A stretch of DNA of 63,280 nucleotides, counting the filler, from Lenisia limosa (lineage: Eukaryota > Protista > Breviatea): assembly GCA_001655205.1 (NCBI GenBank). It is 6 parts of 6 records of this genome, joined end to end, with 100 filler letters (N's around TTAATTAATTAA, not from the genome) between each part and the next. Parts side by side here need not be neighbours in the genome. Positions count along the whole stretch, not along the records: positions 21,321 to 31,489 come from LPNZ01010121.1; 5 more parts are not named here. One strand, given 5' to 3'. Under the pieces are notes generated by a model that worked only from the letters and a program-made list of their open reading frames with translations, had not been told where the DNA came from and did no database searches. The translations under genes and the position numbers were made by a program. Shown one piece after another: positions 21,321 through 31,589 of this stretch; position 1 is the stretch's first letter, and every line of letters begins with the position of its first letter.

Positions 21321-22082
21321 TTGGCGGCTTCACGTTGCTGCTTCTTCTCAGCTACATAGAGTAAGCGCAGTAAAGAAGAAAGAGAAACATAAGCGTAGAG
21401 AAGAAATAGAATAAATAAGCTGAAAGATAAACACAATTCAATAAGAAGTAGACAAAGAGTAAACTCAAATACCAAAACAATATCAATATGTAGGAAGAAG
21501 AAAATACAGAAAAGATAAGCGGGTGATTCTGAGCTATCATTATCACTTGTATGCTCCCAGTACTCATAACAGAGGAGAATAGACTTTCATACCTCTGTTG
21601 ATAACCTCCTGTTGTGCGATATCGATAATCTGAAAAAGTGAAAACTCCAAAATAGAGTTTAAAGACCTCAGAATATGCAAAAGGTGAAAGCGAAATGGCC
21701 TCAAGCTCCGCCAACATTATCAGGAATACGAATGTACTTGATAGAGGGTCCACGAATCGTAGCTTCAGGAAGATGGAAGAATCTGTCTCCGTCCTAAAAG
21801 CGTTACTTTATTCTAAAATTGGATGTGTTGGGGTGAAAGAAGGAAGACGCGCGTACTTTCGAGGTCAAAACAACTTCACGTAACGCGACGTTCATCATAA
21901 AGTCACACGATACAAGATGACCGTTGTAAGTCTCACCACTTTTAAGCTCAACAAGCTGAATAAAGTTAGTGTGTTTTCAAATAATAAAAAAACTGACCAT
22001 GGGATGACCTTGAGCGGTTCTTAACAGTGATAGAGGCAACTAAAATGTTAATACACGATCTTCAAAACAGGAAGCAAACCAT
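21321..22082 (-). CDS. LSM4: U6 snRNA-associated Sm-like protein LSm4 (3' end cut by spacer)
   Basis: M|[14 protein letters not shown]|[33 protein letters not shown]|[26 protein letters not shown]|IIDI closely matches LSm4. Confidence 0.95.
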
Positions 22083-22368
22083 TTTGGGCTATCAAAAGGT
22101 GACTTCTAATAAAACTACTGCTTACTATCTGCTGTCTCGCTCAAAATTAAAGACGTATATATAAAAATCAACAATAGAACCACAGAAAGGCGTCTTTTTT
22201 CGCCAAAAATAAGCTATAAATGGAACGCGGTCGCCGTAAATTGCCATCCTCAAAAAAAGTCCAAAAGGGCCCTTTTTATGAGTAGATAGCTTAGTGTAGT
22301 GTGTATTTTTTTATTTTAAGGACAAGCTTCGTGACAAGGTTGCAGTTTCTCCCAACTTCTTCACAAAA

Positions 22369-25016
22369 ATGCCTGGCGATCCCGATAGGTGGATCAGTCA
22401 ACTCAAAGAATGCAAATACCTCCCTGAAGAAGAGATGAGCCAGCTTTGTGAAACTGTGAGCGATGTTTTTTGTAGTTCTTTGCCATGAGGGACCTTCTAA
22501 TTGATTTTAGGTGGTGGATATTCTTCTTGAAGAGTCAACAGTACACCCAGTTCAGTCCCCAGTCACGGTTTGTCACTCTTTCCTTTTGTCTTCACCACCT
22601 TTCTGACTTTTGTTTAGATTTGTGGTGATATTCATGGTCAATTTTATGATTTAATGGAGCTGTTCCGTGTTGGAGGAGACCTCCCGGACACAAACTACAT
22701 TTTCATGGTGGGATTGTGATCACAATCTTTCTTCCTTGTTTTCATGATTGACAATCGCAGGGTGACTTTGTGGATCGCGGTTACTACTCCTTGGAAACCT
22801 TTTCTCTTCTCATGGCTTATAAGGCCAGGTGAGTGGGATATAAAAGATGGATTATATTTCTGTGTTATGATGTTTGTGTCATTAGTTCTGACAACGCAGA
22901 TACCCCACTCGTATTACCCTTTTACGAGGTAATCACGAAACCAGACAAATCACTCAGATGTAAGCAGAATGTTGTCTTTTTTTGCTTTTCTTCATATGTT
23001 TTTTTTTTGCTTTTCATTACAAACGCCTCTTCCGGCCCTTTGCTACTGTGTTTATGATTTTCTCACACCCTAGCTACGGTTTTTATGACGAATGTTTGCG
23101 CAAATATGGCAACGCCAACTGCTGGCGCTACTGCACCATGGTGTTTGACATGCTCAACCTTGCAGCTGTATGTTGGGCAAGATTGGCATCAAACCGAGTT
23201 GAATAGAGAAGTTTTCCATTTCCCGCATTCCCTCCCTCACCGTAACCATAGCCTACTCTCTTTCGTGATACCCACCACACAGCCATCTACACCTCCATAG
23301 ATCCATTATACACCCCACGTATTAACCACTCAAGGTGGTTGATGGTCGTGTCTTCTGCGTTCATGGAGGTCTCTCTCCAGGTATGTCCGATATGGCATGG
23401 AAATTTAGCCCCACATTCCCCACAAGGACTGGAATAACAGTCTTCTTCCCTTTTATCCTCTAATATCACCCCTTATTACCGTATTAACACCACAGAAATC
23501 AAAACACTGGACCAGATCCGGACCCTGACGCGCAACATTGAAGTGCCGAGCGAGGGCGCCTTCAGTGATCTCATGTGGAGTGACCCCGAGGACACCGCCG
23601 GCCTAACCGGATGGGCGTCGTCGCCTCGTGGCGCTGGCTGGCTCTTCGGCTCCGCCGTCACTGCCGATGTGGGTGCCGGCTTGGTTATATTGTTATGATA
23701 ACTTGTTTGTATTGTTATGATAGCTTGTTTTGCATTGTTGCGATAGGATAGCTTGTTTTAGCTTGTTTACATTGTTATGATAGCTTATTTGCCTTGTTGT
23801 GATTGATTTGTTTGGAGATTTTTCTTAGCTCAATAAAAATCACAAGTTATCAATGTGTCTGTTTTTTTTGGGAACGCAGGGATTACAATAATTAACGATG
23901 GTGCGTAAGGATTTGCTTCTTTGTTGCAATCAGTTATCACCTCTACAGTTCCTCCGTGTCAATGATCTGGAGCTCATTTGCAGAGCGCATCAGCTGGTTC
24001 TGAAGGGCTATCATTACAAGTGCGCTGAGGGCTTTTTTACTGTCATTCTTTTCTTTTCCTTTCTTGTTTTTTTTTGTGTGTGTGTGAACCCTTGTTCTAT
24101 TCTTTGCTAATTGAGTTGTAATCTTATTTTATCGATACTTATTGGTGGTAATTTTGTTTGATGAATAGTCCCCCCCCCCCTCGGTTACGTCAAATTTAAG
24201 CCAAGAGCGTTTCGACAATACCCCTCACCCCTCTCCAGCGACTGGTCTTTGTTTATTTTGTTTTTGAAAAGCCAAAAGAGTTGATTTTGGGCTTATTGTT
24301 TCATTAGTTTTCCATTTTTACACTTAATTTTGGGCTTTTGTTCATAAATTTTCCATTTACCCCCCCCCCCCACCACCGCCGTTGTAGTTACATTTCAGAT
24401 TTGATGAGNNNNNNNNNNNNNNNNNNNNNNNNNNNNNNNNNNNNNNNNNNNNNNNNNNNNNNNNNNNNNNNNNNNNNNGAACCCTCGATAAATATCAATA
24501 TAGTGCCGCATTTGTGGTTCCTACAGTATTGGATTTCGTGTTCTCTCTCGTGTTTTCTTGCATCCGATTTGTTTGCTGAGTAGGGCCTCACTTCGATACC
24601 AACAATTGAATTTCTCAGTAAATAAGATATCGATATTTCACTGGTCTTTTTTGGTCCAAAAGTGAAGCCCAAATGCTGAGCGCCATTGTTCTGTCTTTTT
24701 TGGCCTCGAATATGTCCTTTTCTATTAGTTGGCACCAACACTCAATATATTGCGGCGTTATATTCAGCACACAGATCCTTATTGCAAACAAATATCGGCT
24801 TCTTTCTATTAGAGCTTTTGGTTCCAAACAAGACTGAATTCCTAATAATTTACATTCATGTCGTTCTGACCCTTCCCTTCAGGCTGCGGCAACCCAGCAG
24901 CTATCCTGACTCTCAATGGTAACCTCGATCGTGACTTCAAGATCTTCAACGCCGTGCCGGATGAGGATCGCGTCATCCCCCAGCAGCTCAATAACCCCTT
25001 CGATCACTTCATGTAA
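22369..25016 (+). CDS. PPP6C: Serine/threonine protein phosphatase 6 catalytic subunit (PPP6C/Sit4)
   Basis: [23 protein letters not shown]|[50 protein letters not shown]; GYYSLETF and YGNAN favour PP6 over PP2A/PP4. One exon lies partly in the gap at 24409-24478. Confidence 0.92.
23690..23810. repeat. Degenerate repeat of about 22 bp in a PP6 intron
   Basis: TTGTTATGATAGCTTGTTT-like units. Confidence 0.75.
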
Positions 25017-25564
25017 TCACCCCAGGTGGGCTCGTGTGATTAAACAGATAAACCCTCGATTCATCTCGATTGTCTTCTTTGGCCATAGTCAAGTCCTAAT
25101 TTATCATCCTTGAGTGCTCCAGTCTTGTAATTGTTTTAGGTTGTTTGCTTCTTCTACATCTATTATTTTCTTGTCACCTCTTTTCATCCAAATCTGCTTC
25201 GTGTATTGGATACAGATTTATTTATTTGTACAAAGGGAGTTGGCCCCACGCATTTCTAATGCCTCAAAGCATACATCACAAAACCAATACTGTGTCAGGG
25301 TCAGTGGTGGGGGTGTCAGCAAGGTGTCAGTAATTCAGTATGTTGGTTTTATTTAAGAAGTTAAGGGCCCATCAGTCGCAAATCATCCAATCATTGAGGT
25401 GCCAATCAAATAATCAACTGAAACAACCAACATTTCCGCCCACAGCCCTCCGCCCCGTGATCGCCCCTTTATCAAGAAAATCAAGAATTATTTTCTGAAC
25501 GAATCCTCTTGGTATTTAATAGAGCCATTGAAGATATCTTTGCTTTTAAAACAGTAAACAATTG

Positions 25565-28500
25565 ATGGAAGCACTAGAAGACGACTGGGCTCACATTAAC
25601 GACGGAATCGGAGAAGTGAGTGGTCTTCTTGCCACCTCCTGCGTTAAAATATACTTGTATAGGACTAAACCGCCCGTATCTTTCAACATTTGTTTGTGAA
25701 TATGTCTTTTTTTACCTTCCTTTTTCTATCAATTGATCCTGACAAGGCAAAGCTTCCCATGCTGATTAACAGACTTAAAAATATTCTATCAATTATATTT
25801 CATCCCATTCAACATCAGTCCAATTGTATAAGCTCGGGGTAATTAGGATTCGGCTTACTCACAACATCACCTCCTTTTTCATCCGACTCCAAATCCATGA
25901 TGATACTGCCATTCCAACATAAGCTCATTGCCTAGGACGAGTACCATACCTTTGACGATCTCCGCGAAGAGTGTTGTGAGGAGGAAGCAGACGACTTCGC
26001 TTTTTCCCTCTTCGATAGTGCCCCCTGCGCCCCAGCCGCTCCCTCACCAACAAGCAGCAAATCGTCTTCCAAGCTCTCCCATAAACAAAGGGTGAGCAAA
26101 ACTGAATAGAAACCCGATTTTTTATGTGCTATATATTTGGTCCGGTTCAAGACCGTTAGACTGGTTGAATTGGTCTTGTTCGGGCAGATATCTGAGTATC
26201 GGCCTATTTGAAGATACAAAGCATAAAATAACGGACCAGCTAACCTGACAATCACCAATCAGTTGTGTCTGGGCGAAGGGCTATCAAAATGTCAATAACC
26301 CCTTGCCCGGCCGGTCCAACCAATCATCAGCACATTACATCTTTAGAAGTCCAAGAAGAAGAAAGAACTTGCAGCAACGCCTTCACCCTGCCCAAAGCCG
26401 TCACCTTCACCAGTATCAAGTAGCTGCTTCGCTGAGGCCGAAAAGGTTTCAATGTGGGGGGGGGGGACCATCACANNNNNNNNNNNNNNNNNNNNNNNNN
26501 NNNNNNNNNNNNNNNNNNNNNNNNNNNNNNNNNNNNNACATGGTGGTAGAAGACCCTGTTCAGCATTTTGTTGTTTCCGAACCCTGACGTACCCCAGGAC
26601 TATCAAGAGCAAAGTTGGGCAGAGGGGCCTCTGTGTCATCCGCCTCTCCCCACTGACTTATGTCCATAAGCTCAATATCAACACCAATGTCACCTGTAAG
26701 CTTGTTTCCTTTTCCTAGGCACTTCCATTGAAACACTGGCTCATTTTTTAGCTGTTGTTGCTGGCCCCCAGTCCTTCACTCTCCTTGACCATGAAATGGT
26801 ATGATGAATGATTCTCCCTAGAATTATGCTATCCACTATTGATATATATAACAATGAGATAAAAAATAAGGTTGTATCTGGCGAAAGATAGTAACAACAT
26901 GTATAGCATATATGAATCATATGACTATCAAAAAATAATCGGATGTTCCCGACGTTGTGACAAGAAAACTGGTGATATTCATGGTTATAAAACTGGTGAT
27001 ATTTTTGATACTCGTAGATCACGGTGGGACCCGAGGAGATGGTTACTGTTCCGCCTCTCTACTACGCCAAAATAAAAAATCCCGCGAGTATGCAAGGCTG
27101 AATAATTATTGTTGAGTCAAGACAATACCAGTCATCATATGCGGCCGTTCAAAATTCGGATTTTTTTCGCTAATTCTGGTTTTCTCAAGTAAATCTGCTG
27201 TTTATCTCTTTTTTTGACGACATTCACCCTTTTTGAGAAAACCAAGACTAAAATAGGTATATATATTGTATTTATTTCCCAAATTAGAAGTAAAATGATC
27301 TTGACTTTGGTTACCCTTCATTTTAGGGGTGATTTGTTCTACTTAAATTCTGTCAAAGTACAATATATAGGATGCATAGAGCTCACTAAGAAGCCCAAAT
27401 TTTAAACTTTGAATAACTTTTGACGCCTATTTATTGATTAATAGGGATTCTTAGGAAATATACTTGATAATAATAACATAAAATACTCTAATTCAAATCA
27501 TTAGCGAGAAAAAACCAGAATTAGTGAAAAAGCCAGAATTTTGAACGGCCGCATATGGGCTCATTCTCTCACCATCTCAATTGTACAAAAAACAAAATGA
27601 TTAATGTGATGAGTAGTAATTGTTCAGACATTAAGATTATCGACGGACATGTTGAGGCCGAAGTCGACAAGGCTGACCAGGTAAGCCGATCCCCTGTACT
27701 GTAATAATATGAACAAGATCCCCTTTTGCTTTGTTCCCTTGCTTCACCTTGAAGGTGGTTATCCGCCATGGAGATGTCGAGGTTCGCTCTGACCTCCCGC
27801 CCTTCCCCTTATTCCCGGTAAGTGTTCAAGCTTCAGCTAAAACAAATACTGCGTATTGTGCTCACTGGTATTCATTGAGATATGTACGATGTTTTGGGCT
27901 TCCTATGGTTCGGAAAAGACTGTGCTTATATTTTTCCATATCGATATATCATATACGTATATCATTTTCATGTGATATATATGTATTACCTATTACTTAT
28001 ATATAGCTATATTATTATATAGTATACTAGATAGTATATTTATCAAGGGGTTTCGAGGTCATTAGATACTATAATCCAATATTTCTTTGAGCGTGATGGT
28101 GTGGACCATATTGGCCAGATCCTCTGATCTCTACATATAATGGGCTTTTCTGCGAAAAGGATTAGTTCAACCGGAGCTCACCACCTCTAGGGCGAGATTC
28201 TGGTGGAGAAGCCGCAACCTATCAAGATTGTTGAGGTCAATACGGCTCTATGCCTCCGCGCCCATGAGGAAGGCCGTTATATTACTAAACCAAGTGGGGG
28301 ATTTACGTCACTATGGGGGGGGGGGGANNNNNNNNNNNNNNNNNNNNNNNNNNNNNNNNNNNNNNNNNNNNNNNNNNNNNNNNNNNNNNNNNNNNNNNNC
28401 TGAAGCAAGTCTCCTAGTGATAGACTTGATCGGGGCAGGGAGGTCTTGAGTTTGTTTGATTTCATATTTGTCACGCTATCTCGTGGTATGCTCTTTCTGA

Positions 28501-30991
28501 ATAGAAGTTTGTTTATATCGGCCAAGCCTAACCAGGGACAATGTGTGTGGATAAACTGACCAAAAAGGTATCACAGAAGACGCATTTGAGCAAGACTTCA
28601 AGGCAGGAGACGAGTGGATGTTCTTAGGTGGGTAGTGGGGGGGGGGGCNNNNNNNNNNNNNNNNNNNNNNNNNNNNNNNNNNNNNNNNNNNNNNNNNNNN
28701 NNNNNNNNNNNNNNNNNNNNNNNNNNNNNNNNNNNNNNNNNNNNNNNNNNNNATCGTTACCTTTACCTTACCCTTTACTTTTCCTTCCATACAGGCCCCG
28801 GCACCTATCTGCCCCACGGACATGTGCAGATTACTGAGACCCGGCACGCTGAAGTCCTGAAGGTATGTAACCTCTGTTAAGGCGAATGGTTGAAGATTAG
28901 GACTTAGAATGATCATCGTACACATGTATATCACAAGTGGATGTGACACGGCAGAAAGCATATCATCATACTTAGTGCTTCCCTACGGTCCCAAAAAAGA
29001 TGAATTTCTCGTTAAATCCTCGAAATCCTCGATATGTTGACTACCTGGACCGTAGGGAGCCCTAATCATATTGCTTTCGAAATATTTCTTCACATTTTAA
29101 TGCGGTTCAGAATAACGAAGCCCTTCATATTGAGGCCATCTTTGACTCGGATGGAAAGAAAACAGGTATTTTTGCAAAGTCTCTACGTAAAGATGAAATT
29201 CCGCGGGTTCACGCACTCAGGTGACCGTTGGTGTATCCAAAAGGAGGGCCTCTATATGCCGAAAATCAACGAGAGGATCATTCAACGTATGTTTCCCAAA
29301 TCCAGTTGTCACATTCCACCCAGGGGCGACCAATGATTGTTTATTATCTTTTGAAATACTCGAAGCGTGATGGGGATGACGGCTTTGGCCGGTTACAACC
29401 TACCTTTCATTTCTGCATATGTTTTTTTTGTTTTGAATTAATGGTGTGTACGGCTTCGTTCAGATAGAAGCCTATTTTCCCACTTCTGCTTATAAAATTA
29501 TAATCACCAACTAGGCCACAAGGCGATTTTGATCTCCGACACTCTCGCTGTTTCTGTCAAGGCTATCAAGACCTTCACAGATCAATTCGGCTTCAAGAGG
29601 GAAATTGGAGGTACAGCAGGATTGGCCGCGATTTATCTGTTTAGACTCCTATGTTATCACGAAGGACCTCACCAATGCGTTCATTCCGTGTGTTGAAGAA
29701 ACTGGTTAGTTCTTTCAAGGGGTTACAGATATGTTGTAGTTTTCTATATTGTTCCTGATACCATGTGTTGCATTTTGGGATCTGAGTTGCACTTTTGGAT
29801 GACCAGTAAAATCCCACAGTTGTCAGAGAATCAAGAGTTTTTTTGGAACTAACTAAAACCATTCCTTCCTCTGATATTACCAATATTTGTGATGTAAAGC
29901 CTTATTAAACAGTTGTTGAAACACGTGAGCTGATCCATTTGTCTTCTAACGAGTTCTGCTACATTGAGGACAACAAGGGTGCGGTGCGGTACGGGGGGGG
30001 GGGGACGANNNNNNNNNNNNNNNNNNNNNNNNNNNNNNNNNNNNNNNNNNNNNNNNNNNNNNNNNNNNNNNNNNNNNNNNNNNNNNNNNNNNNNNNAGTG
30101 CTCAGTACAAAGTGCTAACAAGTTAGCAGTCAAAAATACATAAACTTATTGATAGTGTTCTTCTTACGGTAAATAATATTTTGAGACTATAATCAATAAT
30201 TCTTCAACTTCATGGTGTGGGCGACTTCAGCCAGATTTGTATTGAGAAGCTATTTCCCCTAGAATTGACAATTTCCCTCATACCCCTAGTATTGAGAAGG
30301 GCGAGAAGGAGTTCTTCCTTCCGGCGCTTGACAAGCTCAAGAGGCCTCCAACAAAGGGAATTGTCCTTCGTAGGCTTTTGGATAGCTAGAAATGTGGCAT
30401 GCTATTAACATGATTCCCACTTGCTTTTATTATCCTGTATAGGATAAATTAATTTTGTACTCAATATTCCCTTTTTTTTGTTGTTGTTTTTCCAGCTTCA
30501 CACATGACATTTCAGAGAGCAATGCGGCGCTCCACGTCCGCGCCAACAGGGACTTCTTGGAGCCTACCAAGGTCGATGAAGAGGTGAGGATGATGTAAGA
30601 TGATGATAGGGTGATAAAGATGTGGGGTGGATGAAGAAGGCATATGAACCCAGGAGCATGGTATTGGACAACAATGACGGCTCAGACTGGTGAAGTTCTC
30701 GCGTCACAGAAGCGTGTTGCCGGTTCTAGATGGACCATCTACGGCCCTACCATCTACTTTGTTCCTGTGGAGGTGGGGGCGTTACTTTGTTCCTTAATCC
30801 AAAAACCTAACTTGATTTTTTTTTTTTTTTTTTTTTNNNNNNNNNNNNNNNNNNNNNNNNNNNNNNNNNNNNNNNNNNNNNNNNNNNNNNNNNNNNNNNN
30901 NNNNNNNAAGTACAAATCCATGATCGAGATTGGCAACCTCAATGCCCTCTTCTTCAGCAAAGCCCCATTCCAGAATGACTTCGCGGCTTAA
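25565..30991 (+). CDS. Major vault protein-like: repeats R1-R7 only, probable low-complexity N-terminal extension
   Basis: R1 VIRLSPLTYVHKLNINTNVTSVVAGPQSF; R2 MVTVPPLYYAKIKNP...RHGDVEVR...PFPLFPGE; R3 NTALCLRA...AGDEWMFLGPGTYLP; R4 NEALHIEA...GDRWCIQKEGLYMP; R5; R6 KGEKEFFL; R7 AGSRWTIYGP; stop TAA 30989-30991. The join of exons 25565-26446 to R1 crosses a gap. Confidence 0.85.
28972..29066. mobile_element. MITE family A subfamily copy in an MVP-like intron
   Basis: TAGTGCTTCCCTACGGTCC ... GGACCGTAGGGAGCCTA; flanks ATCATACT and ATCATATT (7/8). Confidence 0.7.
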
Positions 30992-31589
30992 ACCCCTTTT
31001 TTTTGTCCGTTTTGTAGTGATCATTACCATTAATTTCTTATTATTTATGTGTGTGCACTATTTTGCTCTAAATAATATTTACATCATAGTATCATCGGTC
31101 ATAGCAATACCCAAAAAGGATAAACAGCAATACGAGCCAGTGAATCGAAACCACTCTACGACCAGAGGTTGACAGTGGCAGCTTTGCCGCCGGCGAAGCT
31201 ATGGTTTCCACTCTGAACCATCAGAGGTTCAATACGCATGGCATCATATGAAACACTATTGTACAAATACGATATTGTCCCAAGTTATGCATATTACATG
31301 GTTACACAATTAGTTCAAATACGTAGTTTCCCAAGTTACACCACTGATTCGGAGCCTCATGAAGAAACAAAATAAATTAATTTAGCTAAAGGCTTTCTCG
31401 AGTGAAGGTCTTTCCCGAGCTTCAAAACGTTTGTAAGTGTATCTAATGGTCAGAAATATTACTATTGCAGAAAAAAAAAAAAAAAAAAANNNNNNNNNNN
31501 NNNNNNNNNNNNNNNNNNNNNNNNNNNNNNNNNTTAATTAATTAANNNNNNNNNNNNNNNNNNNNNNNNNNNNNNNNNNNNNNNNNNNN

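Follow-up and report, generated by a model that had tools for sequence, protein, structure and literature searches.

A short, transcribed major vault protein gene carrying repeats R1-R7 in a Lenisia limosa genome assembly

Structure of the gene and its product

The DNA analyzed here (the window) is a stretch of 63,280 nucleotides (nt) joined from parts of the assembly GCA_001655205.1 of Lenisia limosa (Breviatea), and the gene described below lies in the part taken from LPNZ01010121.1 (positions 21,321-31,489). Coordinates are those of the joined stretch and refer to the plus strand unless stated otherwise. With high confidence, the locus holds a complete, transcribed 20-exon gene for a divergent major vault protein (MVP) homologue, 520 amino acids (aa) long, in which vault repeats R1-R7 stand between an additional head and a vestige of R8. 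The product comprises a 112-aa N-terminal extension, R1-R7 (residues 113-489) and a 31-aa remnant of R8 (residues 490-520). Its open reading frame (ORF) begins with the ATG at 25565, with an in-frame stop five codons 5' of this ATG, and ends with the TAA at 30989-30991. An earlier note on this DNA had read R1-R7 in order and without internal stops, which holds, but had counted about 15 exons where 26630-30991 contains 17, and had placed the start of the gene at 26630; the true start is about 1 kb upstream, and three more exons and the 112-aa extension had been missed.

All 19 introns are GT-AG and measure 34-540 nt when the gap-free contig L001 (described below) is spliced; splicing L001 at these introns yields exactly the same 520-aa protein as is read from the RNA contig. 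The 34-nt intron (29611-29644, GT..AG) is confirmed by the RNA contig, and the last intron, partly hidden by a gap in the scaffold, is in reality 87 nt long according to L001 and to the read-through ORF P0001. The features of the gene are the following.

25513 or further upstream, +: 5' untranslated region, extending at least to 25513
25565-25615, +: exon 1, start codon, aa 1-17, MEALEDDWAHINDGIGE; a loose end of the RNA contig maps to 25586-25615
25936-26091, +: exon 2, aa 18-69, the acidic and then P/S-rich part of the extension; RNA joint GT..AG; no Pfam family
26347-26453, +: exon 3, aa 70-105, lysine-rich patch KQRKSKKKKE and P/S linker; RNA joints
26598-26695, +: exon 4, aa 105-137, R1 begins, VIRLSPLTYVHKLNINTNVT; RNA joints; MVP profile positions 7-26
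26752-26798, +: exon 5, aa 138-153; RNA joints; profile positions 27-43
27018-27087, +: exon 6, aa 154-176; RNA joints; Vault_2 at 13 bits, below cutoff; profile positions 43-66
27628-27680, +: exon 7, aa 177-194; RNA joints
27755-27817, +: exon 8, aa 195-215; RNA joints; Vault_2 at 18 bits, below cutoff; profile positions 80-103
28191-28293, +: exon 9, aa 216-249; RNA joints; the next intron contains the gap 28328-28399 (bridged)
28568-28627, +: exon 10, aa 250-269; RNA joints; Vault at 15 bits, below cutoff; the next intron contains the gap 28649-28752
28795-28862, +: exon 11, aa 270-292; RNA joints; profile positions 145-169
29111-29165, +: exon 12, aa 293-310; RNA joints
29221-29286, +: exon 13, aa 311-332; RNA joints; profile positions 191-215
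29515-29610, +: exon 14, aa 333-364; RNA joints; profile positions 217-246
29645-29704, +: exon 15, aa 365-384; placed by RNA record lengths and GT..AG sites, confirmed by translation of L001
29913-29988, +: exon 16, aa 385-409; the next intron contains the gap 30009-30096
30290-30369, +: exon 17, aa 410-436; RNA piece 30289-30369 and splicing of L001
30516-30583, +: exon 18, aa 437-459; RNA record lengths and splicing of L001
30686-30772, +: exon 19, aa 460-488, end of R7, RVAGSRWTIYGPTIYFVPVE; RNA piece 30684-30775
30773-30907, +: last intron and the first 15 nt of exon 20 (GTGAACATCATTGCC, encoding VNIIA), partly under the N gap 30837-30907
30908-30991, +: visible part of exon 20, aa 494-520, KYKSMIEIGNLNALFFSKAPFQNDFAA, and TAA; remnant of the first strands of R8
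30992-31029, +: 3' untranslated region as far as the RNA contig reaches; position 1 of the RNA record is 31029

Several of the introns contain repeats. Intron 6 (27136-27557) harbors an element resembling a miniature inverted-repeat transposable element, whose terminal inverted repeats are about 50 nt long and consist of two pairs (31 and 24 nt, 90-92% complementary); the DNA word depth there is 740-1560, compared with about 35 for the gene. High-copy repeats also occur in several other introns, at 26858-27243, 28016-28208 and 28788-29173.

Transcript evidence and assembly gaps

We used two public runs from one 2016 study, one DNA-like (X1) and one poly(A) RNA-seq (X2), the contigs of which were aligned to 25700-31489. 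One spliced poly(A) RNA contig of 1653 nt, with a word depth of 41.5, covers the gene as a chain of exons. Every RNA joint listed above is GT..AG, all gaps in the gene are crossed with the reading frame kept, and the contig carries the TAA in frame and runs on for 38 nt to 31029. Across the last gap it has 12 letters, AACATCATTGCC, between 30775 and 30908, again in frame, and the protein reads ..FVPVE-VNIIA-KYKSM... at this point.

On the DNA side, a 3201-nt Logan contig from X1 bridges the gaps 28328-28399, 28649-28752 and 30009-30096. L001, a gap-free 29.7-kb contig in the European Nucleotide Archive (ENA), was reached via P0001, the only other database protein from the locus, and fills all six N gaps with 38-97 nt, among them the gap 26476-26537 within the intron after exon 3. 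Six of the seven aligned blocks of L001 are identical to the draft scaffold; the last (30908-31489) is 99.1% identical, with five mismatches at 31451-31470, beside the terminal A run. L001 probably shares reads with the scaffold and hence, unlike the RNA library, is not independent of it.

The gaps inside the gene are all intronic, and the last one additionally hides 15 nt of the final exon. The earlier note placed the TAA correctly after this gap, given there as 70 nt; the gap conceals the 3' end of the intron as well as the coding letters and, at 30837-30907, is about 33 nt too long in the scaffold. Gap lengths are generally off by 25-55 nt in either direction, with the gap 24409-24478 being exact. 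The contig ends next to the gaps are runs of poly-G, poly-T or poly-A (26457-26475, 28316-28327, 28637-28648, 29993-30008, 30817-30836 and 31470-31489) and look like sequencing or assembly artefacts.

The stop codon is the end of the gene

The TAA at 30989-30991 is the genuine end of the gene, since the last exon has no usable splice donor before it (the only internal GT is in AAGTAC, near the start of the exon), no MVP exons follow, and the next gene is a convergent kinase with its stop about 390 nt from that of the MVP gene. L001 reaches 10 kb past the stop and was searched by tblastn with full-length MVPs and with an 844-position profile made from 46 full-length MVPs. The profile matches the exons of the short gene in order and only at positions 7-403; in the 10 kb downstream, neither search detected coding sequence for R8, R9, shoulder or cap, and no score exceeded about 1.3 bits, in agreement with the earlier note, which had described shoulder and cap as absent. 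The neighbor is an NDR/LATS-type kinase gene on the minus strand (31200-31442, continuing in L001 10137-11337), with a Pkinase match of 2e-19 and a hydrophobic-motif ending FIGYTYKRF. Its last exon, which ends at 31442 and encodes ..YTYKRFEARERPSLEKAFS-stop, has its stop near 31382, and a GT..AG intron of this gene, 107 nt long and on the minus strand, is seen in a second RNA contig.

The possibility raised earlier that transcripts splice past 30991 into R8-R9, shoulder and cap exons is not what we find: the mature poly(A) RNA has the TAA in frame, and the kinase closes the locus. A broader version of this concern is that the gene continues on another contig, or that the contig after the last gap was mis-joined, and the condition of the draft scaffold invites it, with six N gaps, contig ends in homopolymers and a stop just past a gap. 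We regard it as essentially excluded, as the RNA contig spans the gap in frame, L001 has the same order without gaps, the kinase rather than further MVP exons comes next, and P0002, a Lenisia protein described below, has the same end point. We likewise considered and rejected an origin of the stop in a retained intron: there is no usable donor, there are no downstream exons, and the tail is common to P0002.

Upstream of the gene lie a multi-exon PP2A-family Ser/Thr phosphatase gene (22300-25010, plus strand; Metallophos 1.8e-05 on one exon) and an LSm-domain gene (21806-21976, minus strand; LSM 1.6e-08).

Relatives of the 520-aa protein

A HMMER search of 1.84 billion representative proteins with the last 118 stop-free residues as a query returned only three proteins: P0001, which comes from the gene's own locus, P0002 and P0003. 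A protein search with P0001 found only P0001 itself, and a JGI metagenome scan with P0002 found no relatives. P0002 (Lenisia limosa EP01086_P012686, 506 aa) is from a EukProt transcriptome, is labelled a complete ORF, and has the same layout as the 520-aa protein: its head, about 100 aa long, contains a basic patch, R1-R7 follow, and the stop is at most three residues from the same point. Among about 15 billion proteins, it is the sole close relative that we found; the 520-aa protein itself is absent from the Lenisia EukProt set. The two proteins are 55% identical overall; by region, identity is 61% for the repeats, 43% for the tail and 31% for the head. They are paralogues if they belong to the same species (Lenisia), and orthologues if one is from another breviate.

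The 50 other homologues of P0002, to which it is 31-41% identical, have a different composition. The shoulder (PF11978) is present in 49 of them, 46 being 777-884 aa long and three being shorter partial records; the remaining one is a 358-aa fragment without shoulder. Both PF17796 and PF17795 are found in 48 of the 50, and the two exceptions are full-length MVPs without PF17796 alone. In a maximum-likelihood tree the 520-aa protein and P0002 form a clade with 100% support, apart from the canonical MVPs and on a stem of 2.85 changes per site. Of 119 columns that are near-invariant (at least 90%) in canonical MVPs, the 520-aa protein keeps 72 and P0002 keeps 80, with canonical rows keeping 109-119, and the two proteins have 17 derived residues in common. 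We propose, on these sequence comparisons, that they define a small, fast-evolving 'short MVP' clade, recognizable by the head with its basic patch, R1-R7, the same stop point inside R8, the 17 derived residues and the fully supported grouping.

The long stem, the loss of 39-47 of the 119 canonical invariant residues and the vestigial R8 tail, which is disordered in the model of P0002 (see below), could also be the marks of a decaying remnant, that is, a truncated MVP copy that is transcribed and spliced and has no function. We consider this very unlikely. The ORF of 520 codons is intact over 20 exons, all splice sites are canonical, and RNA depth is good; a second gene shows this layout too, and the G, P and W residues that define the fold are retained. 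Because identity is 61% in the repeats and only 31% in the head, the pattern of divergence is not a neutral one. The earlier description of an intact, non-canonical MVP is supported, and the alternative set beside it, a gene that is unexpressed and evolving neutrally, agrees neither with the RNA depth of 41.5 nor with the layout common to P0002.

The third match, P0003, is a 514-aa transcriptome ORF from Rhodelphis limneticus that ends about 30 residues past R7. We rejected it as a member of the clade: the 17 derived residues are all missing from it, its R7 is interrupted by a hydrophobic insert of about 50 aa, and its identity to canonical MVPs is 41-47% in most of the matches listed and 36-39% in the few alignments that cover more than 90% of the query. 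It is probably an unspliced or partial canonical transcript, and may instead be an independent short form.

Two observations concern the wider family. Full-length MVP homologues are annotated in bacteria (P0184 and P0185, from a Chloroflexales metagenome-assembled genome and the cyanobacterium Aerosakkonema funiforme, the latter annotated as 'colicin uptake protein'); their identity to a eukaryotic MVP is 43-44%, and a quick tree nests them within the eukaryotic MVPs, close to Gloeochaete. The ESM Atlas also contains clusters from Euglenozoa and phages that consist mainly of vault repeat domains and have representatives of about 460-485 aa; we treat these as leads only.

Domain composition and predicted structure

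Residues 1-112 are not MVP-like. They consist of an acidic start (MEALEDDWAHIND..), a P/S-rich stretch and the lysine patch KQRKSKKKKE, and no Pfam family matches the head of the 520-aa protein or that of P0002. The heads of the two proteins are barely alignable, and an acidic W-containing motif at the N-terminus is absent from P0002. This motif lies at 25571-25600 (aa 3-14, ALEDDWAHIND) and is an acidic W-x-x-I resembling an LC3-interacting region (LIR); DDWAHI is similar to the Atg8-interacting LIR of p62 (DDDWTHL), and was not used further given its absence from the Lenisia relative.

At the other end, the tail reads MIEIGNLNALFFSKA, compared with canonical AIPLDENEGIYVRD, and aligns to the end of R7 and also, as the earlier note had it, to the first strands of R8. 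Before the stop, only some 24 residues can be aligned with the beginning of R8; most of R8 and the whole of R9 are missing. In the PDB chains of solved vault structures, the last R7 exon aligns to MVP residues 351-371; a PDB sequence search with the 27-aa tail gave no match. Pfam searches with single exons reached 13-18 bits for Vault and Vault_2, all below the cutoffs of 23.6-27, and P0002 served as a proxy for the 520-aa protein in database, Pfam and structure work. P0002 matches only PF01505 (Vault, 1.8e-44) and PF17794 (Vault_2, 4.9e-12), and has no PF11978, PF17795 or PF17796 (no Vault_3 and no Vault_4). Assignment to MVP follows from vault repeats in the canonical order R1-R7, as seen in the exons at profile positions 7-403, in the Pfam matches of P0002 and in its fold. 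Neither the ORF nor the 10 kb downstream contains R8 and R9 (PF17796 and PF17795), the shoulder (PF11978) or the cap-helix.

In the AlphaFold2 model of P0002, residues 101-486 form a confident rod of beta-repeats, and residues 1-100 and 487-506 have a predicted local distance difference test (pLDDT) score below 50. The best structural match of the model is the crystal structure of mouse R1-R7 (3gf5; E 1e-31, template-modelling score 0.73-0.75 by target). Since the model is disordered at 487-506, the R8 remnant is probably an unfolded tail and not a half-domain.

This bears on the idea of a split gene, in which a separate gene would supply an R8/R9-shoulder-cap half and the two polypeptides would rebuild a vault-like shell. 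Its sole support is the tail that stops inside R8, and we judge it highly improbable: no gene for a C-terminal half lies within 10 kb downstream or 9 kb upstream, both short proteins have strongly diverged from vault-forming MVPs, and the predicted disorder of the tail does not suit a half-domain that docks.

Comparison with known MVPs

The short protein has the fold and order of R1-R7 in common with canonical MVP (rat, human and mouse; about 850-890 aa; PDB 4v60 and 9bw5), and many of the fold-defining G, P and W residues; identity over the repeats is 33-41%, a figure that refers to P0002 and not to the 520-aa protein itself. Unlike canonical MVP, the 520-aa protein is without most of R8, R9, the SPFH-like shoulder (PF11978), the cap-helix and the cap ring, has a 112-aa disordered head, and keeps only 72 of the 119 near-invariant columns. 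Its boundaries are nearly those of the mouse MVP R1-R7 fragment (PDB 3gf5, 3gnf and 3gng). However, the latter is a laboratory construct made from a vault-forming MVP and has neither an N-terminal extension nor an R8 remnant.

Truncated MVP homologues are already known. 'Short MVP forms' have been noted in Discoba (PMC12547018 Table S3; PMC3595041), where some diplonemid entries cover only TbMVP1 residues 4-393 or 44-388, approximately R1-R7 (PMC12547018), and truncated MVP matches in trypanosomatids were ascribed by the authors partly to sequencing artefacts (PMC12547018; PMC3595041). The Naegleria short forms (530-559 aa) represent the reverse truncation, keeping the shoulder and cap-helix and losing repeats. 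The Discoba short forms are uncharacterized and come without the transcript and locus proof presented here for the 520-aa gene, which is, as far as we have found, the first with evidence from transcript, locus and a relative that the truncation is real.

Possible function of a short MVP

Self-assembly of vaults requires the cap-helix, which is also key to their stability (PMC3595041, citing van Zon 2002, Tanaka 2009). Because of this requirement, and because the protein stops inside R8, we infer from the published work that the 520-aa protein, which has no R9, shoulder or cap-helix, cannot self-assemble into a closed vault. The shoulder also holds an NAD+ pocket (PMC12280208). The reading that we favor overall, with a probability of roughly 0.6, is a complete short MVP gene acting as a cage-independent scaffold or adaptor. 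The mode of action itself can be offered only tentatively, at somewhat less than even odds: the product would be a soluble, elongated rod of seven beta-repeat domains, partners would bind to the repeat surfaces, which in vaults make up the barrel wall, and the rod would be tethered or localized by its charged, flexible head.

A different role is conceivable if a full-length MVP coexists with the short one. The short protein could then act as a modulator that docks on or into barrels or half-vaults via lateral or waist (R1-R2) contacts, and docking would tune vault opening, cargo or assembly. R1-R7 includes the waist repeats and the barrel wall, and a part of the lateral contacts, less than one third, lies in MVP residues 1-519 (PMC3595041); the MINT domain of vertebrate PARP4, a cargo domain, docks on R3-R5 (PMC12280208), and vaults tolerate N-terminal additions to MVP (PMC12547018). 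However, oligomerization is dominated by the cap-helix (PMC3595041), about one third of the residues invariant in vault-forming MVPs are lost in the short clade, and no full-length MVP of the gene's organism or of Lenisia turned up, though no search aimed at one was made. Taken together, modulation of a coexisting vault appears quite unlikely.

Several points weigh against a cage-independent scaffold or adaptor encoded by a complete short gene. The Pfam and model support comes from the proxy P0002, with the single exons in the window remaining below threshold. Relaxed constraint would also be compatible with the long stem and with a loss of some 35-40% of the canonical invariant residues. The clade has two members, possibly from one species, and its conservation across species is no more than possible. 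Contig-level RNA drops rare isoforms, which makes a minor alternative 3' end possible, and the RNA contig ends at 31029 with no poly(A) site seen.

After forty years the function of the vault is still unclear, and to our knowledge nearly all work handles MVP as a subunit of the cage. Here, a natural, expressed protein matches the laboratory R1-R7 fragment almost residue for residue and has a new flexible head in addition. Two proteins with the same layout suggest that the barrel repeats can be useful alone, and the repeats of the vault wall may have a job outside the cage. The gene offers a handle on this matter through the partners of the rod and the presence or absence of vaults in its owners. 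It also shows that the 'truncated MVP' matches of protist surveys, which are often written off as artefacts of assembly, can correspond to genuine genes. A further scenario, unlikely on present evidence, is that breviates, and perhaps other protists with a short MVP, have lost the cage and kept a repeat-only MVP under selection. If true, it would mean that the barrel repeats have a cage-independent function, such as that of a charged-tail adaptor to a conserved partner, and might give a clue to the binding partners of vault walls in other eukaryotes.

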